Program-made: the position numbers and the translations under genes
The notes under the pieces: model-generated
The model's input: the letters and a program-made list of their open reading frames with translations, nothing else
Database searches by the model: none
What the model was told of the DNA's origin: nothing
Source of the DNA: Cyanophora paradoxa CCMP329
Lineage: Eukaryota > Plantae > Glaucophyta
NCBI GenBank assembly: GCA_004431415.1
Contig: QPMI01000116.1
Location: forward strand, 186,001-250,000
DNA: 64,000 nucleotides
Reading direction: 5' to 3'
In this document: positions 19,655 to 47,640 of the stretch, in pieces
How the letters are laid out: every line of letters starts with the position of its first letter
Position numbering within the stretch: position 1 is the first letter of the stretch

Positions 19655-22600
19655 TTACCAGCTCGGGGGGTACTCGAGCCCGGGCGGGGCGGGCGAGGCG
19701 GGCGCGGGGACGACCCCGTAGACGGGTATGTTGTAGAGCAGCTGGAAGGCGGCCCCGGGGGGCGGGCCCGGCGGCCCCGGCGGGCCGGGTGTCTGTGGCC
19801 AGAGCACGTGGTGGGCGTAGGAGCCGGGGGCGGGGGCGGGAACGGGCGTGCGGGGCTCCGAGGCGGGCCCCGGCGGCTTGGGCAGGATAGGCCGCCCCAG
19901 GCGGGGGTCCTGGTAGGGCATCACCTAACGTAAACGACAAGCATTAAAACAATTAGGAAGCTATAAGAAAGAATCAAAGAAAGAGAGAGGGGACCTGGAA
20001 GGGGACCTCGAGCTTGGGGGCGATGGGGCGCGCGGAGGCGGCCGAGGGGCGCGCCTCCGCCACCTGACGCAAGGACACGATCAGCTCTGAAACAGCAGCA
20101 ACAACGAGCTTGCTTTCGACTAACGACAGGAAGGAGCGGCCGCCCACCTTCCGCTTGCCCCTCCGCCGCTTCGCCGCCGCCTCCAGGAGCGAGCGCGCCG
20201 TCACCACGTCTGTCAGGCGGGCGGGCGGGCGGGCGGGTCGGACGCGCCCCAAACGAGCAGAGTTGGGCGGGGCCGGACGCACCGGCGGCGGTGGGCGTGT
20301 AGTCTGCTTCGGGGTCGGAGCGGGACCGGAGATCGTCCAAGAAGGTGGGCGCCGGCTCCCCCGCGCCCCCGCCCGCGCCCGCGCCCGCGCCAGGCGGCCT
20401 GCGCCGATACGCGACGAGAGCAGCAGTCAGCGGGCCGGCCGGTCTGCCGGTCGGCCGAAGCAACAGGGGCGAGCGGGCGCGCGCACGAGTGGGGCGCCGA
20501 GACGTGCCCGCGCGCGTGCGCCGGCTCGGGCTCGGGCTCCTTCGTGAGCGACATGCTCGCCACCCGAAGCGACAGGTCCAGGCTCACGCGCTGCCCGCAA
20601 GAAAGGAAGCGTGAGAAGGGGGGACGGAGCCGGGCCGGGGGCCGGGAAGTGGGGGGGGGGTACCGCACCATCGCCTCGGCGACCTTGACGACGCTCTCCT
20701 CGTCCTCCAGCACGTGCACCTGCGGCGGGAGGGGGGTACGCCCCACGTCAGGCGAGGCGGGGTACGGCGTTCTGGGAGGGGGAGGGGGGTACGCGCCTCC
20801 TCGCGCATCTCCTGCGGGGACTCGGGGTCGAGGGCGTCACGCCCCGGCGGGGGTACCGGCGGCTGGATGCCCATCAGCGTGAAGAACATCTGACGCGGCT
20901 CGGATCAGATCAGATCAGATCAGATCAGATCGGACCGAATCGGATCGGATCAGATCAGACCATACCTCGTTGGTGGGGGAGGGCGCGGGGGCCAGGGCCT
21001 GCCCCGGGGCGGAGGAGGAGGAGGGGGAGGGGTCCGGGGCGGCGGAGCGGGGCGCGATCTGGGGGCGGTACGAGTGGACTACGTGGCTTGGGCCCGAGCA
21101 GGCGGAGGAGAAGGGGGACGAGGGGGAATGCTCCGCCTGCGGGAAGAGCGTCAGCGCGGCCAGAACCAGATCGGATCGGATCAGATCTGATCTGAGGACC
21201 TGGGAGGAGGAGGACCCGGCTGGCCCGTGAGGCTCGTCGGCGGCGATGGCGAGGCCGCGGGCGCGGTAGGAGAACGGGGCGGAGGCCGAGCCCGAGGCAA
21301 AGGGCAGGCGCCGGGGCAGGGGCAGTGGGAGGGAGGAGCCGCCGAGGGCGGCCCACTCGCGGGCCGCGACGCGCTTGACGCCGAGCACGAAGACTACGCA
21401 GAGGCCCGAGAAGAGCTTCGTGCTCACTGCCCGGCGGAGGAGAAGGGAGTGAGTGAGATGAGTTTGGGAGCGGATGGAGGGCGAGAGAGGGCGCAGGCGG
21501 GCGGCTAGCTGGCGCGAGCAACGCGCTAGGCGCCCCCATCAGATCGAACTGATTCCGCTGTTTCCAGCGCCCCGCGATTGGCTAACAGCCGGCGCTATCG
21601 GCTAACATGGCGCTAGTTTAAGCGGGCGCTATCGGCTAACAGCGAACAGCGAACAGCCAACAGCGGACAGCGGACAGCTAAGCCGGGCGGGGCGCGGGGC
21701 GGGGCGCACGGGAGGACGTGAGGTAGCGCGCGATCGCCGCCTCCGATTCCGAGAAGAGCGAGAGGTACGTGAATCTTTGGGGGGGGAGAGGAGAGGGGGG
21801 TACGCGTTGGACGGACGGGGGCCGCCGGGCCGCTGGGCGGGCGGGCGGGGCGCGCGCGCACCGGCAGCCGTTGGGCGTCGGCGCCACGTGCCGCACGTTC
21901 AGCACCCGCCGCTTCTCGAGAAACCGCCGCGTCGTCCTGCATTCGGGTACCCCTGTAAGAGGGGGGGTGGGGGGTAGGTTTGGGTGGATGGGGGCTACCA
22001 GGTGCCGTCCTGGAGCTCGGCGGGGAGCTTGATTGACATCGCGCTCCCGTCCTCCAGCCTGCGGGGCGCCGCTCGAGAGGGATGGGGAGCAAGCAGGGAG
22101 GGGTACGCCACACCGCCGCGAGGCGTACATCATAAGGCTGTCGACTCTGCGCGCGGCGGCTAGCGCTCAGGGGCGGGGCGGGCGGGCGAGCGGCCGGGCG
22201 GGCGCCGAGGCGGGCGGGAAAAACTTCAGCTTAAGCTTCTATCTTAACAAGCTTCTATTTTAAGCTTAAGCTTCTATCTTAACAAGCTCCTATCTCAACA
22301 AGCTTAAGAAAAACAAGCCTGAAGCTTCTATCTAGGAACGTTGGGCGGGCTGGCGGGCGGGGGCGCCGGGACGCACCGCCAGCCGAACCACGCGGTGCGC
22401 GTCTCGTGGATCGCAACGCCGCCGAGCCCGTCCGGATCCGCCCACGACGCCTCCTCGAGGACCTCGGTGACGCCGTCGCTCACGACGAACTCCGTCAGCT
22501 CGTCGCCGCGCGAGCGCGCCACGAAGCACTGCGCCGCGAAGCCGGCCGGGACCTCCAGATCCACCACGATGCCTGCCCGCCGCCGCCCCGCAGTCAGTGA

Positions 22601-23067
22601 GCTCAAGGCATGCACACCGGTCGGGGCCCTGGAGCGGCGCGGGCGGCGGGGCGCGGCGGGGAGGGGTGCGGGCGCACGGAACCACCTCCAACGCGACGGC
22701 TTCCCGCCCTCCAGGTGCCGCCTGCGGTTAGGGGCGGTCGGGACTCGGGACCGAAGCGATCAGACTAGTACTGCGACCATGAAGGTCGCGCAAGCGTGGC
22801 CACTTGGCGAGACGCCAGATGTGGCGACAGACGCCAGATGTGGCGCCGACAGACCGCCCAACGTTGCTAAAGGCAGCGTAACGCGCAACGCACTGGCACT
22901 GCACTTCCACATCCTCGTGCACGAGAGCCGTGCGCCAGTCGCTCTTCCCGAAGCCGTTCTCTTGTACGAGCGCGAAGACCTGCACGAAAATCACCAATGG
23001 ATCGCGAAGGATCGCTCCCGGCCACCGGCACCTCGTCGAGGTGCCCAGCGTCGTACGGCGCCGGCAT
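19655..23067 (-). CDS. Gene D: multi-exon hypothetical protein with Pro-rich C-terminus and basic KRRRGKRK patch
   Basis: Chain of exons bounded by GT/GC-AG: MPAPYDAGHLDEV.., VFALVQENGFGKSDWRTALVHEDVEV, GIVVDLEVPAGFAAQCFVAR..TAWFGW, FTYLSLFSESEAAIARYL, MFFTLMGIQPP, VHVLEDEESVVKVAEAM, final exon MPYQDPRLGRPILPKPP..YPPSW*. No domain recognised. Confidence 0.65.
22219..22341 (-). repeat. Intronic dispersed repeat core, copy 1 (in gene D intron 22147-22376)
   Basis: Reverse complement reads ACGTTCCTAGATAGAAGCTTCAGGCTTGTT...GTTAAGATAGAAGCTTAAGCTGAAGTTTTT, matching 43237-43339. Confidence 0.85.
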
Positions 23068-23480
23068 GGGCGCGGCGCGCCGCGCTAGCGCTGCTGCCGA
23101 CTCGCCGCCCTCCTCAACAAGGCGTCCCTGATTGCTTTCCTATGTATGCCATGCAAAGCTGCCGCTGCTAACGGCTGCAGGCTCCAGCTTGCTCAGCTTA
23201 GCTTAAGCTTGCAGACGTGCCTTGCACGCACGCGCGATCTATTGTGTACTCGACCGCTGCGCCGATTCCGCTTCGGGGGGTAGTGCCACAGTGGGCGGGG
23301 GGGGGGGGGCGGGGGGGGGGAAGCCGCTCGCTTTTCATCCGCGCGCCGTCCCGCCGAGAACCCCACAATTGCAAGACCGCGCGCGTTGAAAGCTGAGCCC
23401 TGCGCGCGCACGCTCCAAACCCGCGCGCGTACCGCAGGGGCGCATTCGCAGTCGGCGAGCAGAGGATCGAGCAACGCCGC

Positions 23481-26400
23481 TTGCGGCGACGGCAGCAGCA
23501 GCTGCTGCACGATGTTGGATGCGATGCAGCAGCCGCGCGGCATGCGCAGCATTTCCGCCCCCATCCACGCGCTGTGCGCCGCCGGCGCCAGGGAGCATCG
23601 CGGCCGCCCGCAGCCGCAGCCGCAGCCCTGGCGGCAGGAGCGGCGCCCCTCCAGCGCGGGGCAGCGACGGGGCTCGCGGGCGCGCTCCTCGGGCCTTCGG
23701 CGGGGGCCGGCGCTGAGCTCGCGCCCACCGGGTGCGACCCGCTGCCGCGCCAGCCTCTAGCTGGGATTCGCTGGCCGCCTCTGATCCGCGCGGCGTCAGA
23801 CTGGGCCGAGCAGAGGCCGCGCGGTCCTATCTCCTCGCGCAGCGTGCGGTTCGCAGAAGCCGCGGTCACCGGTGGCGGCGGCGCGGACGCGGCGGCGGCG
23901 GGCGCGGCGGCAGGCCCAGAGGCTGCGGCGGCCGCGTGGAACAGGCGGGCGTCGCGGGCGAATTCGATCCGCGTGCGCCTGGGGAAGGGTCGCGCCGCGA
24001 AACGGGCGTCCCTCTTCGCCGCGACTCCCGCCGAGGCGCCCACGCTCCTCGACGACCTCCGAAAGATGTACGCCCCGCGGCTCTATTCCCCCGCGGCCCG
24101 CGTGACGTCACGCAGGTACGTCACGGGGGAGGAGGAGCGGCGGGCCCTCGAGGAGGGCTCCTTTTTCTACACACCGAAGGCCCTCCTCCAGGCCCGCCGC
24201 GTACCCCTCCCCCGCACTTCCCCCCCCCCCCCCAACAACTCACCGGGGGGTACGCGCGCGCAGCGGGAGGCGGCGAGGCTGGACGGGGACGTTCGGGCGC
24301 TCCTGGGCCGCTTCTGGGCGCTGGCGACCGACGGGGCGGGGGCGGGGGCGGGGGCCGGGGCGGGGTACGCCGCCGGGGCCATCCCCAAAAACGAGTACGG
24401 TCCGCGCCCGCCCACCCGCCCGCACCGCGCCGCCCTCCCGCCCGCCCGCCCGAATTATTGAAGCGTTCTCTCCATGGCCAACTGTAATACGCTCAATTAT
24501 AAGACACCAAAGTTAGTCACAGTCGCGTTGCGTTGTCTGTTGTTGTCTTACTTCGGCGCGGGCAGTGCGGCTGCACCGGGCGCTCTACCGCGCCCTACAC
24601 AGCGTGTGGGACCCCGCCGAGGCCCTCCGGTTCGCAGAGGTCCGCGTACCCCCCCTTTAATTTGGCCAACCCCACCGTCCCCGCCCTCGTCCCCGCCCCT
24701 CCGTTTCACCCCCCCCTCCCCCTCTTCCACCTAAATCTGATCTGACCTGATCTGACCGGAGCTATTTATAACACCAGGAGGACTGGGAGCGGGACCGGAA
24801 GGGAGCGGGGGCCGTCGACCGCGACCGCTGGGCCCTCTCCATCTTCGAGGCGCGTACCCCCCCCTCCGCTCTTCCCCCCCCCCTTCCTCGAACCGGGCCG
24901 AACCGGGGCGCAGCTGGCGGACCGGTGGACGGACAGCCTCGAGAAGGAAGCGTGCGCGGCTCCCCGGGGGGTAGGGAGGGGTAGCCGCGCTGGAGGGGTA
25001 CGGGGGCGTCGTAGGATACACATGTGAAGGGGCCTTTCCGGGCGCCTTAGTCGCCCCGAGCCGAGTCGCCCCAGAGCCCTCTAAGTGCCTGGGAGCCTTC
25101 AAGGGGGCCCCGGAGCAGACGACCGAAGCAAGCTAGTCAAAGGCTCGGGGGTCCCTGGGCCTCGGACTGGAGCTGGCGCCCGAAGCTAGCTAGTCCTAGC
25201 CGTCCTTCCTAGCCGTTCTAGCCGTCCTAGTCGCCTAAGCCTATAGCTAGGACCACCGCCTAACAGTCAACTAAGCCTAAGGACCGCCTAAGCCTTGGTC
25301 GCCCAAGCCTAGGACCGCTGTCAGTCCTTGTCGCCTACGTCTAGGACGGCCCCCTCGCCTCCCCCCTCCTCCGCCTAGGAGCGCTGACGCCCCCGCCCCG
25401 CGCGGGCCCTCCCTCGCTCCCGGCCCGCCCCCGAAGGAGCCGACGTGACTCACGCGCCGGGCCGGGGGTACAGGTACCTGGCGTTCCTCTCGCGTCTCTT
25501 CATGGCGGTGGCGGAGTGGGACGAGCGCCGCGCCCGCTTCCGCCTCCGCGACCTCGACGGTAAGTAAGATATAAATAGCGCCTAGGAAAGGAATTAGATC
25601 CGAATCTAGCTCGACCTAGAGCCTAGAAGCTAGGAAGGATATAGCACCTATAAAAGCGATTAGATCTGGATATAACTCGATTGAAGCAATCTGGCCGCGC
25701 CCGATTCCGCCTCCGCGGTCTCGACGGTGCGAGATACTAAGATATAGCGCCTTGAAAATCAATCAGATCTAGGCTGTAGCCTGAAGAGCAATAAGATCTA
25801 GACGGTGCGCGCGCGAATTGAAGCAGTCTGGCCGCGTTCCCATATTATAGCGTCTAATGAAGCAATTTGATCTGGATCTAGGTTAGATAACGCCCGCGGC
25901 TGACTTCGCGCCTGCAGAGATCGCGGAGGGGGTCGCCGCCGGCCCGTCGGACAGCAGCGACGAGGAGGACGAGGACGAGGAGGGGGAGGGGGAGGAAGAT
26001 AACGAGGACGAAAAGGACGAGGGGGGCGCTCGGAGCGCGCGCGACGGCGATCTCGGGGGGCGGAATTCGGGCCGGGGTACAGGGGCCGGGGCCGGCGTCC
26101 CGGCAGGCTCGCCCCACGCGGCGGTTGCCGCCCTACGGCGGGGCCCAGCGGCCGCGTCGCCGGGGCACGCCAACTCGAAGCCGGCGGGGTACGGCCCCCG
26201 CTCCGCCGTCCGCCCCATCGACGAGGACTACTACAAGTGCGGTACCCCTCTGCCTCATCCCCCCCCTTCGATCTAGGACATCTGGGACTCGACAAACGTT
26301 GGATAGAATTGTACCTAGGCCTCCCCCTAGGCTTCCAAACTTTAATTTCATATTGATCGATAGTGATCAGATAAGCGAACGGCGGCCCCCGTCCGCTCCG

Positions 26401-27088
26401 CCCCCGGCCGACTCTCATCCTCGCCGCCCTTCCTTTCGCCGCAGGCACCTCTGCGGCGGGTCGCGTGCCGGCGCGCAGGCGCGGCCGCCCTCGCCCGGCC
26501 CCTCCCGCCCCTCCCCCCCGGGCCTCGTCGGCTCCTTCGGCGGGCCGCGGGCCGTGGCGATCGGCGGCGTACCCCCCTTCCGAGAGGCGCCGGTACCCGT
26601 CCCCGTCCCCGCGGCGGGCCCGCGGCCGGGGCGGGCGCTGGGCCCCGCCTGGCGCGCTGTATCGGCGTCCTTTCCGGCCTCCTCCGCCTCCCTCGAGATC
26701 GGCCCCGCCCGCCCGCCCTCCGCCGCCTCCCTCGTATCCCTCGCCTCCGCCGCCTCCGCCCCCCCGCGCCCGCCTCCCGCGCCCCGGCCGCCCGCCTCCC
26801 GGCTGCCGTCCCGCGCCCGCGTCGGGTCACCTCGCCCCGCCCGCGACGCCTCCAGGCCGCGGGTTTGTTCTGGGTCAGGCCCTGCCGCCCCTGTCCCGCC
26901 CCTTAGTCGTAGGACAGGTCCAGGGCCTGGGCCTGGGCCTGAGGCCTAGGCCGGCCTCGCCCGCCCAGGCGGGGCCGGAGGCGGCGGCGCAGCGGCGGCT
27001 GGCGGCGGCGGTGGCGGCGCTGGGGGGCGGCCCCCGTCCCGGGACCGCCTCGGCCGCCCCATCAACGTTTCCTAGCAGTCCTCCCTGA
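23481..27088 (+). CDS. Gene E: protein with degenerate EF-hand-like module, acidic tract and low-complexity tail (paralogue of gene H)
   Basis: Spliced module FYTPKALLQ|REAARLDGDVRALLGRFWALA..IPKNEY|VRLHRALYRALHSVWDPAEALRFAE|EDWERDRKGAGAVDRDRWALSIFE|LADRWTDSLEKEA|YLAFLSRLFMAVAEWDERRARFRLRDLD (24165-25559). Acidic run DSSDEEDEDEEGEGEEDNEDEKDE at ~25950-26020. Start codon uncertain. Confidence 0.7.
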
Positions 27089-27887
27089 CGTCCACGGCCG
27101 CACATCGTCAAACACCGCAATTATAGCTTTAATTTAAATTTAGTGCTAATGTTATTAATGTCGATCGATCGCATGTTAGCTAGAGGGGAACAGGGGAATG
27201 CCATCTTATATAATCATGGCATCGCGATATCAGCTGCACTGCGGCAGCCTGGAAGAGGACATGCATTTGTGTTCATATGGCCCAACAATATTTAGAATGA
27301 TGTCTACGTCGCGATCGTGCTTATATAATTAGACCTCGCAATTGCAATTGCTTCGAATTCCTGGCCATGGCATGCCGGGCCATGGAGAAGTAGCTCTGAG
27401 ATCTAGAGCGCAGGCTCCGCCCGCGGGTCGCCGTACTCTGCCGTCACTATCGGTTAACGTTCTTATCCGATGATGATATGCAGCTGCAGCATGAAGCGTC
27501 GGAGTTGCGGCCGCGGATCGTTGCGGGCGGCGGGGCGGGCACTCCCCCCCCCCCACCCCACCCCCCCCCCCCCCCCCGCGATTTCTCTAGCACTCTCTGA
27601 AGGGAATTCGAAGTGAAGGAGCGCTCTAGCTTTCTCGACCCGGTGACCCGAGAGGCTGCATCGCTACACTTCTAAATTCGAGAGACACGTTATGTACACC
27701 CTACCAGGCTGCAGAAACCTCGCATGACCCAAGCTTAAGACTGGTCATGGCCCCGTGCAGCAACGCAAACGGCTATGAAGAGCTATAGCTATCGATCCAT
27801 GAACAGCGGACGGCCGCTGGTCGGGACTTGCAATTGGCTACGCGATGCGGATCCGGGTCCGGCCCGGCAGATCGAGCTGCAGGTCGC

Positions 27888-30043
27888 TCACTTGGGCGGG
27901 TCAAGGTAGAGTCTCAGGGACATCTCGTCCATCAGCATCTGAGTGTTGATGTCGGCTGCGCAGACGACGTCAGATATATACAGCTGCACAAATTAAAAGG
28001 CAGTCGAGGTGGTCATGGCGCACCAGTGTCCAGCTGGACGACGACCTCCTTGGTGGTCGGGTGGATGTAGTCGGTCGCGGCGCCCTTCGTGCAAGTCTGC
28101 TCGCTCCAGACCCTGCATGCGTCGCCGTTCAGGTAAACAATTTGCAACCTAATTATAAATAGCTAGTCGCAGCAGGAGAACAATCGCAAACGCGCCAGGC
28201 AGGAATCTCCAAGTTGGTGCAGATCTCGTCGAACTTGTCCGTTTTGACGTTCTTCACGGACCACGTCCACGTCTTCCCCTCCTCGCGAACGTTGTCGCCT
28301 GCATTGCCGCAAAGTTGTGTCAGTATTAATGCGGTTGTGCGCGCGCCTGATTACTTATATATATTTATATATTAATTAGCTATAGCGCTGCGCCGCGGAC
28401 CCTGGATCTTCATGAAGAGCTCGAGCGGCGACTTCGTGAGCTTCGCGAGGTCGGCCGTCACCTTGTAGACGAACTGCGTCTTCGACGGCTTCTGGGCGTT
28501 GTACGAGCCGAACTCAAAGTACTGAGCGTAGCAGTCGCGCTCGAGGTCGCAGCGGGTGGAAGAAGAGGCGAGGAGGGCGACGGTGTCTTTGTTGATCGGC
28601 TTGTCGATGGTGCCCTGTACATGTTGCAGGAAAGTCAGAGATCTAGATCTATGACGGCGAAAGATAGAGTCGCTCAAACTAAAACCACTCACGCCGATGG
28701 GGATGATGTCCGACGGCTGAGTCAAAACGACCTTAATGGGCACAGGCTCCGGCGGGGGCGGCACGGTGGTCGTCAGCTGCGCAGGTTGACGAAGATCACA
28801 TCAACGAGCATCTCCGTGGCGTAGGGGTCTGCGCCGATGATATCGATATCGATATCATCCCACGAAATTGCTGCGAAGATCTAGAGCTAGAGCTTCGAAT
28901 TCAACAACAGAACGCACGGTTGGTCGCCTGGTTGATCCTGATCTCCTTGTTGACCGGGTCGATGAAATTGACGGCGTTGTCGAGCTTGAAGTCCCGCCAG
29001 GTCCAATACCTGCGCCGCGATCGGCGTTGAGCTCGAGGCTGCAACTTGCAATTGCGCAATGGGGACGACGACGTCAGTTGCAAATCGAACCAGCTGGGGA
29101 AGCCGGGGCCCTTGTTGTCGCCAAGGGAAACGAACTTCTTCGCGTTGAAGTCGTAAGCGGAGTAGCTCCACAGAGCGTCGTAGCCAGCATCGCCTGCAGA
29201 ATTCGAAATATATATCAGCGCATGAGCACCGAATTCAAAGCGCTTATGATCACGCGTACGCTTACGCTAGCTCTAGATCTAGCGCTCAGCGGCTGCGACC
29301 CTAGTCGTTCAATTTCCGATCGCAAGGCGCGCCTTGGACTTTGATGGTCACGTCGAGCGAGCCCGTGATGTTCTTCGGGTCGATGTAGTCCGGCAGCTTG
29401 AAGACGAAGTCCGTGTCCGACGGCTTCTTGATGCCGGGGCGAGAGCGGAACTCGATGTAGGCGCCCCAGCAGTCCTGGAAGCCCGTGCACCGGACGTGAG
29501 CCTTCTTGGTGATCAGCATGTAGTTGTTCAGCACGACTCCCTGCAATGCGCAGCGCAGAAGTCAGCACTCGGTCAGGGAACGAGCTCGCGCGCAGTCTAA
29601 GCTTATATATATATGTGGCGCATGCGCAGAACTTCGGAATCTCAAATTAATTTAAAGCAACTCACGTTTTTGATGAGGTCCGACGACGCAACGAGGGAGA
29701 CCTTGTAGGTGGCGTCGACTGCCGCCGCCTGCATCTCGGTCGCGCCGACGTAGACGTACGCGGGGCCCGACTGGGCGGAGGCCGCCTTGTCGTCGCGACC
29801 CGCGGCGCCAACTCCGCGCTGACCGGTGCTCCCGGTCCCGCGGGCGGCGGCGGCGGCGGGCGCGACGAGTGCTGTCGCATTCCGAAGACGTCAGGGCGCT
29901 GCCGCAACACGCGAATTCGAACGGTTCTCCATACACGTGCACGCACCGAGCGCGATGACGGCGCCGAGGGCGACGACGAGGAGGAGCGAGGGCTGGCCGC
30001 CCTGAAGCTTGCGGCCGCCGCGATGGAGGGCGGCGGAGGCCAT
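27888..30043 (-). CDS. Gene F: secreted protein with two tandem ~160-170 aa Cys/Trp-containing beta-rich domains
   Basis: MASAALHRGG..SLLLVVALGAVIAL|ALVAPAAAAA leader. Repeat 1: RCTGFQDCWGAYIEF..KPSDTDFVFK..KVQG|D..WSYSAYDFNAKKF..NFIDPVNKEIRI..EMLVD. Repeat 2: RCDLERDCYAQYFEF..KPSKTQFVYK..KIQG|D..WTWSVKNVKTDKF..DYIHPTTKEVVV..QMLMD. Stop at 27888-27890. One apparent 1-nt frameshift near 28782. Confidence 0.8.
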
Positions 30044-30835
30044 CGCTGACAGAGCTTGCCTGTGCTGCTGCAGGTGCTCTTCCGAAGGAGGGACTGAGCG
30101 AATGCTGCAGCAATGGCGGCCGCCGTGCGAATTTAAAGAGACCACCAAACGATTCGCTCGAAACGGCGCGGGCTCAGCGGCTCAGCCGCTGAGCGGCTTT
30201 ATTGTTTTTTAATTTCGAGTCTCAATCGCCGTTCGGAGCGCCCAAAGCCCGCAGGTGACATTCTAGCCGAAGCGTTCGAAGCCCGTCCGACGGTCAACTT
30301 GAAAACCAGTCTCGCAGGCCTTGCACACGAAACGCCCGTCACGGCGTGACTTCGCAAGCGATCCACGCGTCACCGCGGGGCGCAGAGTGGTTTTCCGAGT
30401 TTTTTTCGCGCGGTTATGCAGGGTGACTTAAGCTTCGCGAGCGTGCAAGCTTAAAATCAGCGAACTCCGCCGCAGCGAAAGTCCGACGGTCGTCATTCAA
30501 TTGTCACCGCACAAGTCACTGCAGAATGTTAACAACCTGCAGAATTTCGAACCAGAATTTTTATAGATCATATATACGGTTCTAGTTCTATGTTAACCGT
30601 AAGACTAACCACCAGAAGTGGGGCTATTTCCGAAGTTCCGTATACGTAAGAAAAAGCGTTGGTTCATGGTCGGTAATTATAGAACCACTAGAAAGGTTTT
30701 CATGGTTCGTTCAACGGTTCTCATGGTTCTCATATGCATGATCATGCATGCAGATATATGAGAACCACCATGCATACTCAGTATGTAATTTGCGCGCGGC
30801 CCCCCTGCGCATGCCCGGCCCATGCCAGCCTGACT

Positions 30836-30940
30836 CCTGACAGTTGCACGCGCGGAGATCCGGATCCTAGCTATAGAGCCGCCTGACAGTTGCACGCGCG
30901 GCCCAGCCTGACAGTTGCACTGCGGCACGCGCGGAGATGC
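30836..30940. repeat. Three short direct repeats CCTGACAGTTGCAC(GCGCGG)
   Basis: Copies at 30836, 30882 and 30907 in the F-G intergenic region. Confidence 0.8.
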
Positions 30941-31471
30941 GCAGGATGCTGTTGTTCTGCTCCAGGCAACCAGGCAGGCTGCGCTGCTGCGCCGGCAGCC
31001 GCGCGCTAGCGGTGGCTGCTCCGTTACAATTGCAGAGTTGGGTTCGCATAATTTCCTACAGAACCATCATCTGCTTCGGGATTGATGTATCCGGATCGAA
31101 GTAATGAAAATTGCCGAGGATCGAGATCGAACTAGATATCAGGCTACAAGCTAGAGGAGTATGTTCAACGATAAACGTTAAATGTTCTACCTTGGCTTGC
31201 TAAGCTGCGTATGCATCCGGTAAAACGTCCTAGGGTCGTAGAATAGACATATAAACCATCATTGCACTATCTCCACACTGATTAATTCCAGACACTTATC
31301 TGAGCCACTTATCGTGGTACAGCCGCTAGCGGTGCCCCCGAACGCTGCCGCAGCGCTGCACCACGTACTCGCAGGAAAGCCGCCGGTCCCGAACGGCGCG
31401 AAAGAAGAAATCTCCAAAAATTGAAGGAAGAAGAAGAAAGGGATGGAAGCGGGGAGCGAAAGGGCGGCGCG

Positions 31472-34400
31472 CTAGCAGCGCAGATCGACGACGAGCGGGG
31501 CGCTGCCCTCGTCGGCCTCTTCGGGCCCCGGCGCACCGCCCAGCCTGCGCGCGGGGCGTCAGCGAAAGGCGCCCCGCGGACGGCAGGAGGGCAGCGGGCG
31601 GCGGTGGCGCACAGCGCGTGCGGGGCGGCGTGGTGCATCTCGTGCTTCGGGAGGGGGTGCTCGTGGTAGTCCCTGGGGTGGGCACACGGAAATCAGGAGG
31701 AGCGGGGTACGGGGTCAGAGGGGCGGGCGGCGGACCGGTGGGGGCACGCGGCGACGATGTGGAGGCCGCGCTCCGTCAGGCGGAACGCCGCGATGCTGCC
31801 GGGCAAGGCGGGGTACCGCGTTACAGGGCCGCGGGGGGGGTACAGAGCGACAAGCGGGGGGTACGCGCGCACTGGGCGTCGGACTTGGGCGCGACGACGA
31901 CCGACACGGCCTCGGGCAGCTCCATCTGGAACTGGGGCCGGGGCGCCTCAGGCCGGGCGGGCGGGGTACAGGGGACAACGGCGGAAAAAGGGGTACCGGG
32001 GCGAGGTCGTGCATGTCGATGGAGGAGAGGGAGCACTGCTGGGCGGGGGTGGCCTGCCGGGCGCCGGGCGTGAGGGAGCGCCGGGTCGAATCCGGGCAGC
32101 GGATTTAAGCATAAGGGACGCACGGTGATGAGGCCGGCGAGGACAAGGCCGCGGGCGGCGGCGGCGCGGGCCGCCTCGTCGCGTGCGTCCGGCGGCACGA
32201 CGCTCGCCTGCACCGAGCTGCACTGGCGCGGCACGAGCACGGCCCGCACGGCGAGCGCCGTCCCCGCCCCGCCCTCCCCGTCCGCCGCCGACGCCGCGAG
32301 GAAGCCGGCCGTCTTGCGGTACGCCTCCGTCGCCGGACGCGTGAGCGCCTCGAACGCGGCGAGCACGGCCGACGGCACGCGCAGCGCCCGCAGCGGCGGG
32401 GGCGCCGGGGCCGGAGCCGGCGCGGGCGCGGCCGGGTAGGGGCCCCGCGGGGCGAGGATGACGGGGGGCGCGTGGAAGGGCGGGGGGAAGAGGAAGGGGC
32501 CGGGGCGGGGTACAGGATGGTTCCGTCGGGGGCGACGAGGGCGCCGGGGGGGGAGGGCCGCCGCCGGCCGCGGCCTGCGGCGGGGGCGCCCCGGGCCGAA
32601 GAAGGCGTGCGGGGCCAGCGGCTGGCCGGGGAAGGGGCCCGGGGGCCGTGCGGGGCGGGGTACGCGAAGTGCGGCGGGGCGGGGCGGGGGGCGTGCCGAG
32701 GATGCCGGGGGCCGGCTCCTCGGGCGGGCGGGCGCGGCGGGGACGACGGGGATCGGGGCGGGGGCGGGGCCGGGACCGCAGCCGGGGCGGCGGGGGCCGG
32801 GGCCGGGGAGCGGGGCCCGGGGCTCGCCTCGCCGCCGCTCTCCGAGGCGGCGGGCGACTCTGGGGACGAGACGCCGCCGGGCCCGCCCGAGCAGACGTGC
32901 GGCTCGCCGAGGGCGGCGGAGACGGCGGAGCAGACGGCGCGGAGGGAGACGAGGAGGGCGACGAGGTCAGGGCGGGGGCGGCCCTCGAGCAGCGAGCCGG
33001 CGTCCTGCCCGCCCAGCAGCAGCCGCGCCCGCCAGTCCTCCTCCACCTTCTCCTCCCCCTTGGGCGACGCCTGCGCCGCGCCGGGGGCGGCGCCTGCCCC
33101 GGGGCGTCGCGGCGGCGGCGGGCGAGGGCCGCCTCGGCGTCGGCGGCGCGGCGAGCCTCACGCGCGGCGCGCGCCTCCGCCTCCTCCGCGCGGCGCCGCT
33201 CCTCCGCGAGGCGCCGGTGGACGGCCGCCAGCTCCTGCCGCGCCCCGCGCGCCGCCTCGCCGGCCCCGCGCTCCCGCCCCTCCGCCTCGGCCAGCCGCCG
33301 CTGCAGCGCCGCTCGGCCCTTCTCCGCCTCCTCCGCCGCCGCCTGCGCCCGCTGCAGCGCCGCCCGCGCCTCGCCGTGCGCCGCGCGCTCCGCCGCCAGC
33401 GCCGCCTCCGCCCGCCGCGCCGCTTCCTCGGCCGCCCCGGCGAGGCGCCCCGCGGCCGGCGGCGCCCGCCGTCGGTGTCTGCGCCGCCGGCGCCCGCCGC
33501 CGCGGGGAGCGCCTGGGCCGGCGCCGCGGCCGCGGCCGCCGCCGCCCCGGCGGCCTCTATCATGGATCGGCACGCGGCGTCCTGGCTCGCCGCCCACCGC
33601 TCCCGCACCTCCTTCAGGAACCGCTGCGGCGAATCTCAGGCGCGACCGGGTACGGGTGCAGGCCCAGGCGCCAGGACCCGTACCTGGTACCAGACGCACT
33701 CGAGGACGCTGCCGACGGCGTTCCAGAAGCGCGTCTGCTCGCCGCTGTACCCCCCTCAGAAACGAGAAGGGAGGAAGGGGGAAGGGAAGAGGCGGGGAGG
33801 GCGGACCCGAGGTGGACGAGCTCGATCATCTGGAGGCGGGTGGACTGCAGCTCCAGCTCCGTCTCGCGCAGGCGCAGCATCGAGTCCAGCCACTTGCCGC
33901 ACTTCTCAAGGTACCCCCGCACGTCCGCCTGGGGGCCCTGGCACATCGCCAGCACCCGCACCAGCGCCGTCCCGTCCCGCCGCGCCCCGCGCCGCTCCTG
34001 CCTTCCGCTCGACCGGGGAGGGGGGGAGGGGGGGAGGTGGGACGGGGTACGTGCACGCACGACGACGTGGTCGCGGAGGAGGCGGTGGAGGAACGGGGCG
34101 GGGAAGCGTTCGCCCAGGGCGAGGACCTGCGGGGGAACGGTCGCCTCGCCGGGGCCCGGCGCGGCGGCGCCGCCCTCCTCGTCGACAGAGTTCCACGCCG
34201 CCAGCACAGAGGAGACGGCGTCGCGGTACAGCTGCGCGGGTGGGGGGTACGTGAGCCGGAGCCGGAGCGGAGAAGCCTCGAAACGGGGCGGGCGCGCCTC
34301 GAGGGCGGTGTGCGTGCGCTTGCGGCGCTGGCCGATGAGGGGCGGCGCGTGCGGCCGCAGCGACATCGCCGCGTCGTCCACCGTGCAGATCTTCGACGCC

Positions 34401-37016: not shown

Positions 37017-38491
37017 CTGCTCGCGCTAGCACTGCGGATTGAACATGCACGTTACTGCTGCTTCATCAACACCGATCCGGGGCGCTGATCGGGACACAGC
37101 CGCCCCTGACCGCGGATCTAATCTCTAGCCCGGCTCGTGCGCACCGTGGCGCAGGAGGGCGTCGCCTGCGGTGCTAATCGCGCTCCCGGTGACGGTGCGA
37201 AGCGCTCCGTGCTGCGGATCGGCAGCGCTTGGCCGGCGGATTCTTTGGGGGGCGAAGTTTGGTTGGGGTACCGTCCGAGCAAGCGCTTGGGAGTACCCCG
37301 TCGACTGTTGGACCACGTACCCGGCCCTGAAGAACGTTAACTTTTCGAATTCGAAGCGCTAGCGAGTTTCCTCGCAAGGGAGCTCACAGATTGGATCGGA
37401 GCCAACTTCTTAATTCGCTTAGTTGTTATAATTATTGGGGCCCCAATGGGGGGAAACTTTAATCAAGAGATGACGTTTTGTGACGCCATCCGCATATAAT
37501 GCATATGCGTGATGCCTTTTTCCGATTTATCTCTTTACGAACCGACGAGAAACTTGCGTGACGGGTACACGGTGTTGTTGTCGAAATTCCGCTCATCGGC
37601 GTCATAATATTGCGTCCAATGAATCGGCGAACCGGGGCCCGGGGGTATATCGATATCGCGGAACTCAAATTCTGACCGCTGATTGAGATCCTTTTTTCTT
37701 CTCAGGGTAAACCTGCGAGCTTCTTCCGGCATTTCCATTGGCTAACTCACGTCATAAATCGATTATTAACAGGCACGCGCCGGATTAATGATGAGTGCGA
37801 CCGCATTGCGTACCCCGGGCTCGAGGCGGGGAGCAGCCTGCGCACGCAGCTCCCCAGGCTCCCGCCGCGAGTCCCGCGCGGCCGCGCAAGCTGAAGTCGG
37901 AGCTGGGCCGGGGCGTCGAGTCGTCGACCAGGCTCGGACCAGCCTGGCAGCTGCAGGCGCTGGGAATCGATCGGGCTGCGAGGAGCTAGTAGCCTAGTTG
38001 GCCCTAGTAGCAGCGGCGGGCGCGCAGCTCGCAGGCCCTGAGGATCGACGTCGACCGGGCGCGGCCGAGTCGATCTCCCGAAGTTCGGAGCGAGACTCGA
38101 GAACCTCAGCGACCCGCATACGCAGTTGCAACCTCCCCGACTCTCCCGGGTCCCGAAGTTCGGAGCGAGCTATAACTCGCTCCGGCCGCGGTAGTCGCGG
38201 GCTCGCTGCCGGGTCTCATTAGCGTCGCGAACCGCATGCGCAGTTGCAAGCTTCGCCTTGTCAGCATCAGCAGGATCAGTCCCTAGCTAGCTTAGCGGCC
38301 TCAGCCTTACTAGCTGGCCCAGCAGCCAGATTCGCGCCGTAGTAAGTGCAACTGTCGGGTCTCGTTCGGATTCGCGTCGGCTCTGCACTCGGCTGTGCCC
38401 GTTGCACAGCCACGGAGCGCATCTTTGCGGCGCACGATAGCAGCAGGGAGCTGCTAGTGTGTGAGAGCGTAGCTCCTCCCGCGGGTGCACG

Positions 38492-39742
38492 ATGGCGGAG
38501 GCAGCGTCGGCGCCTCCCCCAGGCGAAGGTGGCCCAGTGCGGCGGCGGCTTTCGAACGCGAAATCGATGCACGCTTCCTCTGCCGGGAAGGTGGAGGCCG
38601 GGGGCGAGGCCAGCAAGGTCGCTCCGGCGGCCCATCGGCCTCCCCCCTCTTGGCACGGCCAGCCCCTGGACAACGTCCGCGTGGTCGACGAGTCCATTAC
38701 GACGCGCCTTGAGCTTCGCACCGCGCGCCACGAGCTTCGGAAGCTCAGGGAGAGCGCAGCCGCGGCTCCGGCGGCCACGGCGGCGGCGGGCCCGGGCGCT
38801 GATGATGACGAGGGCGGAACGCTGGCGCTGATCCACGCGAGGGAGCGGCTCATGCGCCTGCAGCGCCGCAACACGATCAACCTGGGAGACCTGCGCTCCC
38901 TGAGGCCGCCGAAGGGCGTGGCCCTCATCCCCCAGCTCCAGCACTTCTACAAGGCCAACGGTGCGCGAGATGGGTCGAAGGACTCTCGCCCCGCCTTTGC
39001 TGCTCACGCCCGAAGGCAGAGGGGGGGCAGATCGAGCTCTTCACGCCCCAGGCGCTCCTCCGGCGCGAGTCGATCCGCTTCGAGCCCCGCATCGTGCTCT
39101 GGCTGTGCGCCCCGGCCCCGCCCCGCCCCAGCCCAGCGCCTGGCCCCGCCCTTAGCTCCCCGCAGGCACCTCTACTGGCGGAGCATCGACCTGGACGGGA
39201 GCAACACGCTCGAGGAGGACGAGTTCGTGCCCTACGCCATGTGCGCCGTGTTCCGCTTCGGCCCATAGGCCTTAGCTTAGCCGATTCCCTTAGGCTGCTC
39301 TTCAAGCTGCTGCACAAGAGCAAGAGCGGGGAGTTCAACGAGGAGAAGGCGCGGCGCTTCGCGATGGAGGACTGGGAGGAGGACCGGCAGGGCAAGAACT
39401 ACATCAACACGGAGACCTTCATGGTCTCCCTCTTCCAGGTACCCCCGCCCGCCCGCCCGCCCGCCCGCCCGCCCCTATGCTCCGAGTACGAGGCTCCAAA
39501 GCGGCGGCCGCTCGTCCAGGGCTGCCTTTAAGCCTCGTCCTAGCTGTAGGCGGGTCCTAGCGTTTGTTTCGTTCGAGCGTTCGAGGCGATATAGACTTGT
39601 CCCCGGGGCGATTTCGAGCGTTCGTTCGTTAGCTCGCTCGCTCGCTCGATCGCTGACGGCCCCGACTGCCCGCCCGCCGGTCGTCTCTGCGGCGGGCCCT
39701 CGTCCTCTCTAGATATTGGGCCCCGCGGGACGAATTTGAGCG

Positions 39743-39803
<61 letters not shown>

Positions 39804-42800
39804 GGCTCGCCCGCCCTCAGCTCGTGGACACATGGACGGAGGGCATATCGGAGTGGGAGTCGGAGCTCTTCCTCCGCACCCTCTTCCACACCGCCATGAA
39901 GTGGGACCCCGCAACCGGCCGCTACGTCCTCCGCGATCTCGAATGTGCGTGAGCTGATAAGCTAGCTGGCCGGCTATCTATAAAGCCTTGATCATCCAGC
40001 TACAAAAACAAGCTCCTCCCAATGAGCTGCTGCTGCCCTCGCGGTTTGGTTGTCTGATTCGCGGTCGCAGCGGTGCGCATGGGGGCGGCTGTGGACGCGC
40101 TCGAGGAGGAGCGCGCGCGGCGCAAGGCGGCGGCGCGCGCGGCGTCCGGCCGCTCGACGCGCCGCATGTCGCTCTTGGGCAACAACGCCAACGCCCGCCC
40201 TGACCTCTTCTCCGTTGTCGCGGCCGTCATGCGGGGCCCGGACGGCCCGGGCGGCTCGGGCGACGGCTCGGGCTCGGGCTCGGGCTCGGGAATCGGGGCC
40301 GGCGTTGCGGGCGGCGACGGGGCCGGCGGCGCGGGCGGCGCCGGTGCTTCGGGCGCCGGTGGGGCTGGGGCGCGGGCGGCGCGGGCGGCGCGGGCGGCGC
40401 GGGCGGACTCGGCGCCGGCGGCGCCGGCGGCGCGGCCGGCGCGGGCAGCTTCGGCGCGGTCGGCTTCGGCGCGGGGGGGGCCGCCGGGAGTGCCGGCGGG
40501 GCCGGCGGGGCCGGCGACGAGGACGGGGAGGGCTCGAAGGAGAACGATTGGAGCCGCCTCTTCGCCTTCCGCAGGGACCTCGGTGCGCTTCTGTCGATTC
40601 ATGACCTTAAGATTGTGCAGCGAAGCTTCCTTAGTCGAATTAGAACCTTAAGAAGCGAAGCTTCTTTAAAGCATGGCATGTGACAGTAGAATCACATTTG
40701 TCGGGGCCCCGTCTCTTTCTCCGCCCGCCCTCCGTTCGGGCGTGGCTGATGCGCGGAGAACAGCGGCGAAGCAGGCCGCGGAGCGCGAGCGGGCCGGAAA
40801 GTCGCAGCGGGGCCGCAAGCAGGACGGGCCCACGCCCGCCGGTGCGCCCCGCCCCTCGCTGGCTCATGATCGCTGGACCGTACTCACTGGACCGCAGAGG
40901 GCCTCAACCTTCCCTTCGTGCCCCAGATCCGCGAGGAGATGTACAAGAGGCTCCTGGGAGGGCGCTGGTCCAAGTCGATCCGCAAGGCGAGCATCGACCT
41001 GCAGCAGACGCGCGAGGTGCGCTGCGCTGCGCCCGTGCTTGAGAGCAGAGCAGAGCGCTGCGGGTACCAGGAAGCCGCCGTTTCGGATTCGTCATCGGAA
41101 GAAGGAGCTCAAGCTCGCCTGGCTAGCCAGCTAGCTAGCTAGCTAGCTCTCTCCGCCGCACCCGCCCGCTCACACGGGACCTGCCCCGCCCCTCCCGAGC
41201 GCTGACCCGCAGCAGGCCCGCGGGCGCTCGATCCTCCACCAGGTCACCCCCGTCGACGAAATGAAGGGTCCGCCCCCGCCCCCCTCTTGCTTTCGTTTGA
41301 ACTACAGAAACGTTGATGTTGACCTTCTGAGACTATAGAAGAAGCTAGAAGCTAGAGAGAGGCGTTGGTTGGCGCCGATTCTGGACTATATGTAATGAGA
41401 GCCCGCTTCGCGCGCGTGCAGAGCTGCAGGAGCGGCTGCTGGAGAGCGCGCTGCGGGGCGCCGGCATCCGGGACGACGGCGGGTCGACCTACACCGGATC
41501 CTCGGCGGGGCCCTCCCACGCCGAGAGCCCGGAGCGATCCTCCGTCGCCGGCACCGAAGAACGTGACCCGGACCGCGAACGCGAAAGGGACCGCGAGACG
41601 AGCTACAGGTGAGCTTGAGGATGTGCTATATACATCGCTGGGAAGACCCCCCTGGCCTGCCCGCTTCCTAGTGCTGGGCGGGCCTAGCCCTCTATCTTTT
41701 CTCTACATCTACCGGGCTGGGGCAGGCTCGCTGGGGCGGGGCGGGGCGGGCCTAGCCGGGAAACCTGCAGCTGCCGCTTGCGCTGCCCTCCTCCGCCCTC
41801 GCCTAACCCCCGCGCAGCTACTTCGGGGCCGGCTCCGAGCCGCCGCCGCCGCCGCGGCCCCGCGGCCGCCGCTACTCCATCGCGGGCGAGTACACGCCGC
41901 CCGTGCCGGGCGCGCCGGGCGGCCCCGACGACGGCTCCCGCCCCGTCTCCATGTCCATCAAGAGACGCGTCTCCCTCCTCATGAACAACGTCGTCCGCTT
42001 CCCCGCGGACGGCCCGGGCGCCCCGGCCGCCGGGCCCCGCGCCGGCATGCCGTTCTCGTCCCTGTCCAACTCAACCGGTGCGGTGCCGCCTCTGCCCCGC
42101 GCCCTCTGCTGCCCCGTCGCCTCTCGCTGACCGAGCCGCCGCCCCCGCCGCCGCAGCGTCCAGCACGCCCAACACGGGCGGGACGGGGGGCTACGGTACC
42201 CCGGGCTCGGGCGCCTGGACCCCGCAGTTCGCTGGCCCGGCCCCCGTCGAGGCCTCCGGAGCCTCGGCTACCCCCGGCGGCTCCAACAACACCTCCGGAA
42301 GTGCATACCCCCCGCCCCCCTTCGTGACGCCTTCGGCGAGGAAGCAAAGAAACTAACAAACGCACGAACAGGCCGCCCGGGCTCGCGCCCAGGCTCGCGC
42401 AAGAGCGTCGGCATGGCGATCCGCGCGGCGGCGCTGGCCGAGGCGGCGGCGGCGATGGCGGCGCTGGCGAACGGTCCCCCGGCGGGGCTCTCCTCGCCGG
42501 GCGGCCAGTCGGGCTCGACGCCCTTCTACTCGCCGGCCTCCTCCTCGGCCGAGTTCGCGAGCATGGGCGAGGGCGACCCGATGGGCCCCGGCCCCGCCTT
42601 CACCGTCCGCTCGCCCTTCGCGGCCGTGCAGGCGGCCCTGGGCGCCGCCTCCGGCTCGCGCACGGCGCGGTCGACGGAGTCGCGGGGCGCCTCCCGCTCG
42701 CCCATCTACAGGATGTCCTCGGACGATGCGGGGTACGGCTCCGGCACCAGCTCCCCCTTCACCGTCGTCGGCAGCGGCGCGGCCGCCGCCGCCGCGACCG

Positions 42801-43067
42801 GCGCGGCCGCCGTCCCCCACCCGCCCCCCCTCGTGCGCTGCTTCCTCCCCCCCTCTCCCCCCCTCCCGGCTCACCTGACTCAGGTGGACGGCGTCCCCGT
42901 GGAGCTGACGACGTTGCGCTCGAGCGCCCAGTCGGGAGCCGCCCGCTCCCTTCGCTTTGCCCTCGACGTGCGCGCGCACGAAAATTCGGGTCCCGCTTAA
43001 AAGAGATAGGCCTCGGGTCCCGTAGAGGACGAAAGAATTCTTCGCGTTTCGGGGACGACTTCTCCCG

Positions 43068-43099
<32 letters not shown>

Positions 43100-45537
43100 T
43101 GACGGCCGGCCGCGCGCAGGCGGGCGGCAGCGGCTCGTCGAGCGCCTCGCCGGCCCCCTCGGCCACCGTCTCCCGCCGCTCCTCCGTCTCCTTCGAGGTC
43201 CGTCCGCCCGCCCGCAGCGCCCGCCCGCAGCGCCCGACGTTCCTAGATAGAAGCTTAAGGCTTGTTAAAATAGAAGCTTAGAGCTTGTTAAGATAGAAGC
43301 TTAAGGCTTGTTAAGATAGAAGCTTAAGCTTAAGTTTTTCCCGCCCGCAGCGCCCGCCGCGCCCGCCCGCCCGCCTTCTTCGCGTATGATCGGTCTGATC
43401 CTTATCCGTCCGCTTTTCGGCGCAGCCGTCGGAGGACGGGCAGTCGACGGGGCGTGGCCCGGAAACGAACCGCCTGGGCGGCCGCCGCTCCCTGGAGGTC
43501 CGCCTTTGAACCAAGTTTGAGGGCCCCGTGTTCGAGAACCTTGAGGATGCTAAGATATATCGAATGTATTTATAGCTGCCCTGGGCCCGCCCCTGTCGAG
43601 ATGTCGTTTCGGTCTTGGGGCTTCCAGTCCTAACCTCCTCGCCTGCGCAGGTGCCGTCGTCCTCGATGCCGCACGCCGGCGGAGGGGCGGAGCGGTCCCA
43701 CTCGGCCAGCCCCTCGATCGCCATCCAGGCGAGCCCTCCCTTCTCTTATTATTATTCGTCCCTTGCGTATTCTAATCGATCTTCTTCTTCTTCTTGTAGA
43801 GGGCGATGGCGGAGGCGCGGGCGCGGGTGGCGCGGGGCGAGGGCGGCACCGGCTCCTCCGCGAGCGATGGGAGCGCCGGCGAGGAGGAGGGCGGCTCGCC
43901 GCCCCCGCCGCAGCTCCAGGGACAGGGCCAGGGTGCCCGCCTTCACGTGCCCCGCATCCCGGGCCTCACCGCCCCGGTGCGTACTGCGACCCTCCGGCCA
44001 AGTCTAGAAAACTTGGGTGGGGCGGGAGACTAACACGATGTTCTGCCCTCCTAACGCCTCCTAACAACCGCCCCCCTTGCCCCACAGCTGATCAACGTGG
44101 TCCCGAACACGCCGGGCGGGAGCGTGAACAACAGCCTGAAGACGCCGCACGGGCCCCCCGACGGCGTCTCCCTCCGCGACGAGCTCCGACGCCTCCACGA
44201 GGCCGACCTCCAGGCGAGCACTAAGCATATACTAGTACTGACGATAGACATTATTATTAGACGTACTAGAGCTGGTGCTCAAATCGAGGTCCATAGATCG
44301 ATTTATGCTTAAGAGGACAGGAGCCCCTTCTCCCCGCGCCTTCTTGAATTTAGAAGGAATCTGAAGAGCGAAGGCCTAACGGAGCTTTGGTTCCTTCTTC
44401 ACAACCGTTCTAACTTGCGCGGCGGCGGCAGGCGCGCCAGGCCTCCTCCTCGGGCCCCTCGTCCACGCGGGAGGACCGCTCGGGGGCGGGCCGCATCAAC
44501 CCGCTGCACCGCCGCCTCTCCAACGCCGCCGAGTACCCCCCGACCGGGCCCGGCGCCTTCGGCCCCGTGCGCTCTACCCCCCCTAAGCTTCATCTTCTCT
44601 TCTATCTATCCATCCATCTGATCCCTACGGGCAGCCCGAGGCGGCGAGCCTGCAGCCGAGCCCGCGGCGGCGGGGGTCCGTCGAGCTCCACACGAAGCCG
44701 CTGGTCTTCGAGGGCGACCCGACGACGCTGCGGGGGGTGCCCGCTCACCTCTCGGCCGACACGGTCGCCGCGGGCCTCCCGGGGGCCCCTGAGCCGCCCT
44801 CGGCCCCGGGCGCCCTCTCCCTGGGGCCCTATGCGGACCCGTCGCCCCCGGCGCGGGCGCTGGCGCCCCCCCAGCAGCAGCAGCATCCGCAGCAGCAGCA
44901 GTCCGGATCCCTCTCGCTGGGGCCGTTCGAGTCGCCTCGGCGCTCCCCCGCCCGGGGGGTCTCGCCGGCGCGGCAGGAGGTGAAGGTATTCACCATCGGG
45001 CCGGCCGCCGCCGCCCCGCTCACCGTCGCCGGGATCGGCCGGCCGGCCGCCCCCGCCGCCCCGCGAGGCGGTCGCGTCCAGTTCGAGGAGGGCGCCCGGC
45101 GCGCCGACGGCTCCGCGGCGGGGGCGGCCCGCCCGGCAGGCTGCCCCACACCCAGTCGCAGCCGACTGTGGAGACGTCCGCGGCGGCGGCCGCGGGGCGC
45201 CCCGGGAAGCTGCCGCACGCCCAGTCCCAGCCAAGCCAGTTGGTCCCCCGGGGGCCTCGCCCCGCCGGTCACCACCGCCCACCGCGTCACGCCCGCCGGT
45301 TCGCCGCCCGCGGGCCGCACGTCGCGGCGGCGGCCGGCGGCGGCGTCGCCACGCGGCGCGTCCTCGGGCAGACCAAGAGCCACTGAGCGGCGCACGGCGC
45401 GCACGGCGCCGGTGCCGGCGCCAGCGGTGCTCCGCCCCCTCCTCCCCCCCCCCCCCCCCCCCCCGCCGCCCCTCTGGACGGCCTTCCAACCTCGCGATCG
45501 GCTGGTCGCCTTTCCTTATACCCCCCGTCAAAACTGA
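38492..45537 (+). CDS. Gene H: EF-hand-containing protein with long Ser/Gly/Ala/Pro low-complexity region (paralogue of gene E)
   Basis: Canonical EF loop IDLDGSNTLEEDEF (39185-39226). Module LFTPQALLRRESIRFEPRIVLWL|..|LLFKLLH..EEKARRFAMEDWEEDRQGKNYINTETFMVSLFQ|LVDTWTEGISEWESELFLRTLFHTAMKWDPATGRYVLRDLE. Many downstream low-complexity exons. 3' end uncertain (45386 or 45537), and the distal part could be a separate gene. Confidence 0.7.
39742..39799 (+). repeat. (CT)n microsatellite in gene H intron
   Basis: About 58 bp of CT dinucleotide with one interruption, just upstream of CTGAC and the acceptor at 39820. Confidence 0.95.
43237..43339 (+). repeat. Intronic dispersed repeat core, copy 2 (in gene H intron 43198-43425)
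   Basis: ACGTTCCTAG followed by ~4 copies of the 23-bp unit ATAGAAGCTTAAGGCTTGTTAAG, ending GTTTTT. Flanked by perfect 17-bp direct repeat CCCGCCCGCAGCGCCCG (43220-43236, 43340-43356). Confidence 0.85.
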
Positions 45538-46718
45538 TACCCCGTCAATCCCTTCTTCTCCTTCGTTACCCCTCATCTCACGCCTCCAAATCATTCGCCC
45601 GAAAAACATCATTCTGCACAGCGTACATGTTTCGCCATTTAGAGTATTTTCCTGAACCGTGGCACTTCTTCCTTTGTCGTCTTCTTCTTCTCCTCCTTCA
45701 TTACCCCTCATTCCACGATGTCCATCTCACTCGGCACTTGTCGGTATCCATCATCGATATCGTAGTACGGAATGATTGCTCGGCCCTTCCCTTACTTTAC
45801 ATTTCCGAACGATTCGCTCTGCCTTGCAAAACCCTATATAGCTGCATGAACAGGACTCTACCGCTAATTTACCAAGCGCCGCTAATTTACCGCTAATGTA
45901 CTACAGATAAAGATACCAAAGCACCTCCGAGCTCTATGTTATACCATAACCCGTACGTAGACAGTTCAACCCAGTTCCGTCGCTAGCATAGTATGTCAGA
46001 CACCGCGCCCGTAGGGCACTCGTATATATGGCAGGCATTGGTAGCAGGTGTTACGTTTCGATCCAGGAGGACCAGTACCGGCTTCGGCCGCGGTGATTGG
46101 CTCGACGTTTGATTAGACTTCAAGGCTTCGAAATTGAAAACTCGACTTTTGATTAGACTTAGACTTTCTACGATCCCTCGCGATGTAAAATGTAAAACCA
46201 TGGACTTATGCATACAACGAATTCTGATCGAATGAATGGCTGATCGAATTCGGTCGACGTCGGCCGGCGCCTCGAGCTCCGCCCCGCGGGCGCGGCCATC
46301 CGACGTCGACGGTCCGGGGCAGTCACGTGCACCCTGCAGCTGGGCAAATGGCCATCGACCCTGCACAGTTCACCCCCACCCCCACCCCCCCCACCCCTCC
46401 CCCCCCCACTCCCCTCCCCCTGCTGCGCATGCCTGCGCTTACGTGTACTCCCTCTCGTGCTTGAGCTTGCACCGCAAAACCGCTAGCGCTTGCGCCGCTG
46501 ATCGCAGCCGAGCACGCCCCGCCGTCCAGACCGTGCTCTCTTGCCGCAGTGCTGCGCTCATGATCAGCACGCCGCCGACATCGAGCTTATACGTATACCG
46601 CAGAACCGCGTGCGCCGCTGCCCGCAGCCGATCGCGAGCACGCCGGCCGGGCCGGGCGCTCTTGTTGCGCTCGGCACTGGGCCGGGGTCGTTCTGCCGCG
46701 CGCATGTGCGTGCCACTA

Positions 46719-47475: not shown

Positions 47476-47640
47476 AAGGGCGCCCGGCGCGCATGCGCGG
47501 ACGGCTCCGCGGCAGCCCGCCCCGGCAGGCTGCCCCACACCTCGGGGCCCTTTTTTTCCCCAGCCGGTCGCTGGGCCCTTCCCCTATTTTACATTTCCAA
47601 ACGATTCGCTCATGATCAGTTTTTACAAATCCCTAAAACT
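47476..47640 (+). pseudogene. Decayed, internally deleted copy of the gene H 3' region
   Basis: AGGGCGCCCGGCGCGC..GACGGCTCCGCGGC..GCCCGCCCGGCAGG(G)CTGCCCCACACC matches 45089-45152. GGCCCTTCCC.TA.TTTACATTTCC.AACGATTCGCTC matches 45782-45819. Confidence 0.65.

Follow-up and report, generated by a model that had tools for sequence, protein, structure and literature searches.

A short AT-rich repeat shared by two predicted introns of unrelated genes in Cyanophora paradoxa

A short AT-rich sequence occurs twice in a 64-kb window of the genome of the glaucophyte Cyanophora paradoxa, at positions 22219-22341 (minus strand) and 43237-43339 (plus strand), each time within an intron predicted for one of two unrelated genes of contig tig00000455. 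The window is the whole stretch of DNA analyzed here, and all positions are numbered within it. The similarity of the two shared stretches, hereafter called cores, is confirmed as genuine and lies far beyond chance. We give about an even chance to the reading that the pair represents a short (103-123 bp) AT-rich interspersed repeat with internal tandem units, which was inserted at both sites as a member of a putative family.

The head of the core, the 20-mer ACGTTCCTAGATAGAAGCTT, is identical in both copies (22322-22341 on the minus strand and 43237-43256 on the plus strand) and occurs exactly twice in the window; when three mismatches were permitted, none of 100 shuffles yielded a match. The tail AAGTTTTTCCCGCCCGC is likewise exact in both copies, and GATAGAAGCTT-type units, of which 0.33 would be expected in the window, number nine and are confined to the two core loci. 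Aligned with each other, the cores are 93% identical over 102 non-gap columns, and the differences are mainly indels of 8 and 12 bases. A blastn comparison matches 22377-22164 to 43197-43392 with 74% identity over 219 columns (E 2e-34), and within 1.5 kb on either side of both loci it returned only low-complexity noise beyond the repeat. Thus, the sharing of one sequence by two introns, as asserted in a preliminary description of this DNA, is borne out.

Both copies have the same orientation relative to their host gene (sense). Stop codons are present in every frame of the core, and our reading of both sequences located no CTRAY branch motif on the core sense strand. Two further observations favor an inserted repeat. 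The middle of the core varies by whole units with an exact head and tail, and the copies are the sole long-range homologous pair among the 71 AT-rich islands of the window. A local minisatellite was considered and rejected: the units are tandem, but the array, together with its unique head and tail, is found at two loci 21 kb apart.

To locate the limits of the homology, each intron was divided into 5' flank, core, and 3' flank, and these parts were scored against each other and against unrelated tracts of the window. The core-core match reaches 86.8 bits, compared with about 25 bits for the best unrelated match, and for each flank, the score from unrelated C-rich tracts (e.g., 39434-39476, 11396-11463, and 24415-24450) equals or exceeds that from its counterpart. 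Because the flanks are no more alike than unrelated tracts of this kind, the homology begins 35-39 nt downstream of the donor, ends 72-86 nt short of the acceptor, and covers no more than the central 45-54% of each intron. In both copies, the flanks look like standard intron sequence, with a consensus donor, a C-rich tract, and a branch-like CTGAG or CTGAT. The window contains 17 instances of the motif GT(G/C)CGTCC, 11 of the 15 annotated donors in the two host gene models (g1048 and g1055) begin with GTGC (typically GTGCGC or GTGCGT), and the usual acceptor is ...GCAG or CGCAG. Furthermore, CCCGCCCGC tracts serve as sense-strand intron filler that follows the strand of the gene, and C-rich tracts also open other introns, as at 39439 (GTACCCCCGCCCGCC).

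Given this recurrence, GT(G/C)CGTCC, CCCGCCCGC, and CGCAG are ordinary intron features of this genome and lie outside any mobile unit. The layout that the preliminary description reported for both introns is therefore present motif by motif, and the portion outside the core is generic to the genome. Its proposal that whole introns had moved, in the manner of Introners, is not supported by the comparison of flanks. Its alternative, an element of 100-120 bp that lacks inverted ends and resides in CCCGCCCGC tracts of introns, fits homology limited to the core. Without their cores, the introns would measure 107 and 125 bp, close to the mean of 86 bp published for the genome, which agrees with the insertion of a repeat into existing introns. 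The published genome comprises 712 contigs and 99.94 Mb, with 67.6% GC and 9.2 introns per gene (PMC6704402).

The only protein recovered in a word search with the open reading frame upstream of copy 1 is EukProt EP00741 Cyanophora paradoxa tig00000455_g1048.t1 (g1048), and a HMMER search with the exon near copy 2 matched tig00000455_g1055.t1 (g1055). These two proteins are unrelated to each other, and each is a singleton in the collections searched (one hit and one real hit, respectively; cluster size of 1 for each), which leaves no orthologue or paralogue with which to date the introns. A look-up of contigs that encode the g1048 protein gave no record, and Pfam searches conducted separately with each host exon revealed no family. 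The published models disagree with the introns of the preliminary description. The g1048 model has no splice at 22376 and ends at the first TAG of the core, and the g1055 model reads through 43198 into the core and is then spliced from 43264 to 43425. Since most annotated donors begin with GTGC, the donors GTGCGT and GTCCGT look better than GTTAAA, a preference that depends on sequence comparison. Both Augustus models that read into the repeat (g1048 at 22328-22570, minus strand; g1055 at 43120-43425, plus strand) are probably mis-modelled in these regions. Coordinates are collected in Table 1.

Table 1. Features of the two repeat copies and of the introns and exons that surround them
Feature	Positions	Strand	Length	Description
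Copy 1 core	22219..22341	-	123 bp	34% GC; head ACGTTCC..., irregular 16/19-bp AAGCTT units, tail AAGCTGAAGTTTTT
Copy 2 core	43237..43339	+	103 bp	33% GC; head as in copy 1, three in-register 23-bp units, tail AAGCTTAAGTTTTT
Copy 1 5' flank	22342..22376	-	35 nt	donor and generic C-rich tract
Copy 1 3' flank	22147..22218	-	72 nt	C-rich tract of generic type, branch-like CTGAG, and acceptor
17-bp direct repeat, left	43220..43236	+	17 bp	adjoins copy 2 core; within 13-bp tandem array 43207-43236
17-bp direct repeat, right	43340..43356	+	17 bp	adjoins copy 2 core
Predicted intron around copy 1 (gene D of the preliminary description)	22147..22376	-	230 bp	donor GTGCGT, in agreement with the species consensus; acceptor GCGCAG; absent from the annotation as an intron
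Last annotated exon of g1048 (136 amino acids)	22328..22570	-		runs past the predicted donor; stops at TAG 22328-22330 inside the core
Predicted intron around copy 2 (gene H of the preliminary description)	43198..43425	+	228 bp	donor GTCCGT; acceptor GGCGCAG
Annotated intron of g1055 (814 amino acids)	43264..43425	+		atypical donor CTT|GTTAAA inside the core; same acceptor as the predicted intron

If the pair is indeed an interspersed repeat, its copies would sit in two unrelated orphan genes, each within the C-rich tract of a short intron that is otherwise ordinary, and the repeat would be cargo within the intron and not the intron itself. It would provide neither the consensus donor, which lies 35-39 nt upstream, nor the acceptor and the branch region, which lie 72-86 nt downstream. 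Because all three frames of the repeat contain stop codons, a gene should tolerate it only if splicing removes it or if it falls past the end of the coding region. It would have arrived through insertion into C-rich tracts, and a target site may have been duplicated in the process at copy 2.

The candidate for such a duplication is the perfect 17-bp direct repeat noted in the preliminary description. It is real and abuts both ends of the copy 2 core, which is consistent with insertion. Its meaning is ambiguous, as the left flank is itself a 13-bp tandem array, and duplication lengths of 0, 4, and 17 bp are all compatible with it. The element was also described as having a T-rich end and no terminal inverted repeats, unlike typical short interspersed nuclear elements (SINEs) or miniature inverted-repeat transposable elements (MITEs), and we find the same: the tail is T5, and the ends are not inverted.

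A number of results weigh against an inserted repeat. No more than two copies are known, separated by 21 kb on a single contig, and a third, even a diverged one, is absent from the 64-kb window; the sizeable family that the preliminary description took two copies to imply is putative. The core has no match in viral or metagenome contig collections. The usual hallmarks of transposons are missing as well: the core ends carry no terminal inverted repeats (the only palindromes, AAGCTTAAGCTT, are internal), neither core has an A-rich tail, and ARAGORN detected no tRNA or tRNA-like head in the core. Likewise, the ends (ACGTT...TTTTT), with A/G as the flanking base on one side and C on the other, are not those of a Helitron (5'-TC...CTRR-3', between A and T). 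At copy 2, the 13-bp array together with 0 or 4 additional bases would be enough to account for the direct repeat, and copy 1 lacks a clean duplication, its nearest 10-bp match being located 9 nt from the core. To these points must be added the disagreement between the published models and the predicted introns.

Two other searches yielded no additional copy. One 20-mer match in a genome collection, to a metagenome-assembled genome of Flavobacteriaceae, was rejected because it shows no similarity beyond the 20-mer and about one chance match is expected in 596 Gb. No gene model that reads into a copy (peptide TFLDRS...) was found among proteins of 448-1424 amino acids or of approximately 160-510 amino acids, although this test is weak because it relies on a single frame and short matches.

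Other AT-rich islands in the window offer a broader setting for the repeat. The words AAGCT, CTAAGC, AGCTTA, and AAGCTT are over-represented 5- to 9-fold in the other 69 islands. The AAGCTT flavor is therefore genome-wide, and the vocabulary is not specific to the core. Direct repeats of at least 10 bp flank 9 of the 71 islands, as opposed to 4 of 493 mismatched-flank controls, which supports insertion, with the qualification that some of these are tandem duplications. Also favorable is the island at 6485-6580 (plus strand), where a 70-nt AT-rich insert composed of tandem units of about 24 bp lies inside a gene and is bordered by a perfect 13-bp, AGGT-bearing duplication, AGGTCCCGGCGGC. Removal of this insert as AG|GT...AG| restores the reading frame (...SVQK|VPAAS...), and the site looks like an intron created by an AT-rich insertion.

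The 6485-6580 insert resembles the core in its AT-rich, AAGCT-rich tandem units, its long flanking repeat (13 bp, compared with 17 bp at copy 2), and its position within a gene. It differs in that its duplication carries AG|GT, so that the insert by itself would form an intron. Direct similarity to the core is weak and antisense only (local score of 18-19, reached by 1-2 of 500 shuffles). One could speculate that the core is one member of a superfamily, present in glaucophytes, of AT-rich insertions that bear minisatellites and have target duplications of 13-17 bp, in which one orientation creates introns outright, as at 6485-6580, and the other survives only in existing introns. We consider this extension unlikely.

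A different origin for the pair is a single event of ectopic copying with no family behind it. In this scenario, one intron broke within its C-rich tract, and the other intron, located 21 kb away, templated the repair, with the strand-specific CCCGCCCGC tracts providing homology and the AT-rich core between them being copied across. Both core boundaries do lie inside generic C-rich tracts, 9 identical bases directly follow the core on its 3' side, and the strand specificity of the tracts would make the shared orientation automatic. The restriction to two copies on one contig, the absence of inverted ends and of a clean duplication at copy 1, and the (weak) failure to find another model that reads into a copy are also compatible with such an event. 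It does not readily account for a 17-bp repeat that adjoins both ends of copy 2 exactly, for a conserved head and tail around a variable middle, which resemble the termini of an element, or for the nearby AT-rich inserts with flanking duplications. On balance, we regard one-off copying as possible but somewhat unlikely.

It seems decidedly unlikely that the two introns are those of a true introner, made when insertions into C-rich exon sequence coding for proline and arginine co-opted GT and AG sites of the host. Introners of Florenciella that co-opt both splice sites have been described (PMC9860276), both introns here are 2.6 times the mean length, both copies are sense-oriented, and the 6485-6580 insert has the appearance of an insertion-made intron with an AGGT-bearing duplication. 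However, the homology falls short of the splice sites, the flanks resemble standard intron sequence, and the remainder of copy 2 after subtraction of the core and the repeat holds an in-frame TGA. Nor is there an orthologue or paralogue in which an empty site might be seen. We find it very improbable that the core is a functional intronic element, such as a noncoding RNA or a protein-binding DNA array, that has been retained in two genes. Conservation of head and tail and units rich in palindromes (AAGCTT and CTTAAG) would suit such a role, but the cores fold no better than shuffles (z-scores of +0.62 and -0.71), Rfam returned no family at the gathering threshold or at E values up to 1, ARAGORN reported no tRNA, and AAGCT-type words are enriched in all the other AT-rich islands.

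Further duplications and repeats were encountered elsewhere in the window. At 13888-14008 (plus strand), a 14-bp repeat located at an exon end, GCCCGCCACCTCCT, is found again 107 nt downstream; the two copies enclose a 93-nt AT-rich insert, which begins with GGTACAT and may have supplied a new donor ahead of an old GTGCCC. At 25538-25810 (plus strand), an exon-intron junction (..TTCCGCCTCCGCG.CTCGACG|GT..) is duplicated in tandem within the next intron. A 42-nt direct repeat that is 90% identical (45778-45819 and 47570-47611, 1.8 kb apart) surrounds a low-GC stretch in which a 41-bp tandem pair and, at 46750-46815, a 29-nt hairpin are present, and the bracketed stretch may be a small mobile element. 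The region 28000-31500 is an island of 58-60% GC with well-scoring minus-strand exons, of which one matches GH114_assoc (PF14741, E 3.5e-5) and two share a similar cysteine-containing motif. A long periodic repeat at 53400-54660 is open for reading on both strands. Finally, the genes at 24033-25558 and 38654-39940 (both plus strand) have exon motifs in common (DWE.DR.G... and W....R..LRDL) and look like paralogues of an unnamed family.

At present, the interspersed repeat favored here is a two-copy intronic repeat. If it represents a large family, then Cyanophora would join the algae whose intron content is shaped by insertions, and the long flanking duplications would point to an insertion route unlike that of known introners. 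If the superfamily outlined above exists, Glaucophyta would gain its first introner-like system. A 2022 survey lists the assembly with 0 genes, and therefore this group was probably not screened there (PMC9860276).

Compared with known systems, the repeat is reminiscent of the introners of Micromonas, Aureococcus, Chrysochromulina, Florenciella, and others (Gozashti et al. 2022, PMC9860276) in that one sequence lies in sense orientation within introns of unrelated genes, the alga is GC-rich, and a target duplication may accompany the core. It departs from them in that its homology spans only the middle of the intron, two copies are known, the ends are not inverted, and we found no sign that insertion of the core made an intron. 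MITE- or SINE-like intronic inserts are similarly short, noncoding, AT-rich, and tolerated in introns, and a direct repeat is likewise present at one copy of the core. In contrast to those inserts, the core has no inverted ends, no RNA polymerase III or tRNA-like head, and no A-rich tail, and it instead ends in T5 and has a body built as a 16/23-bp minisatellite.

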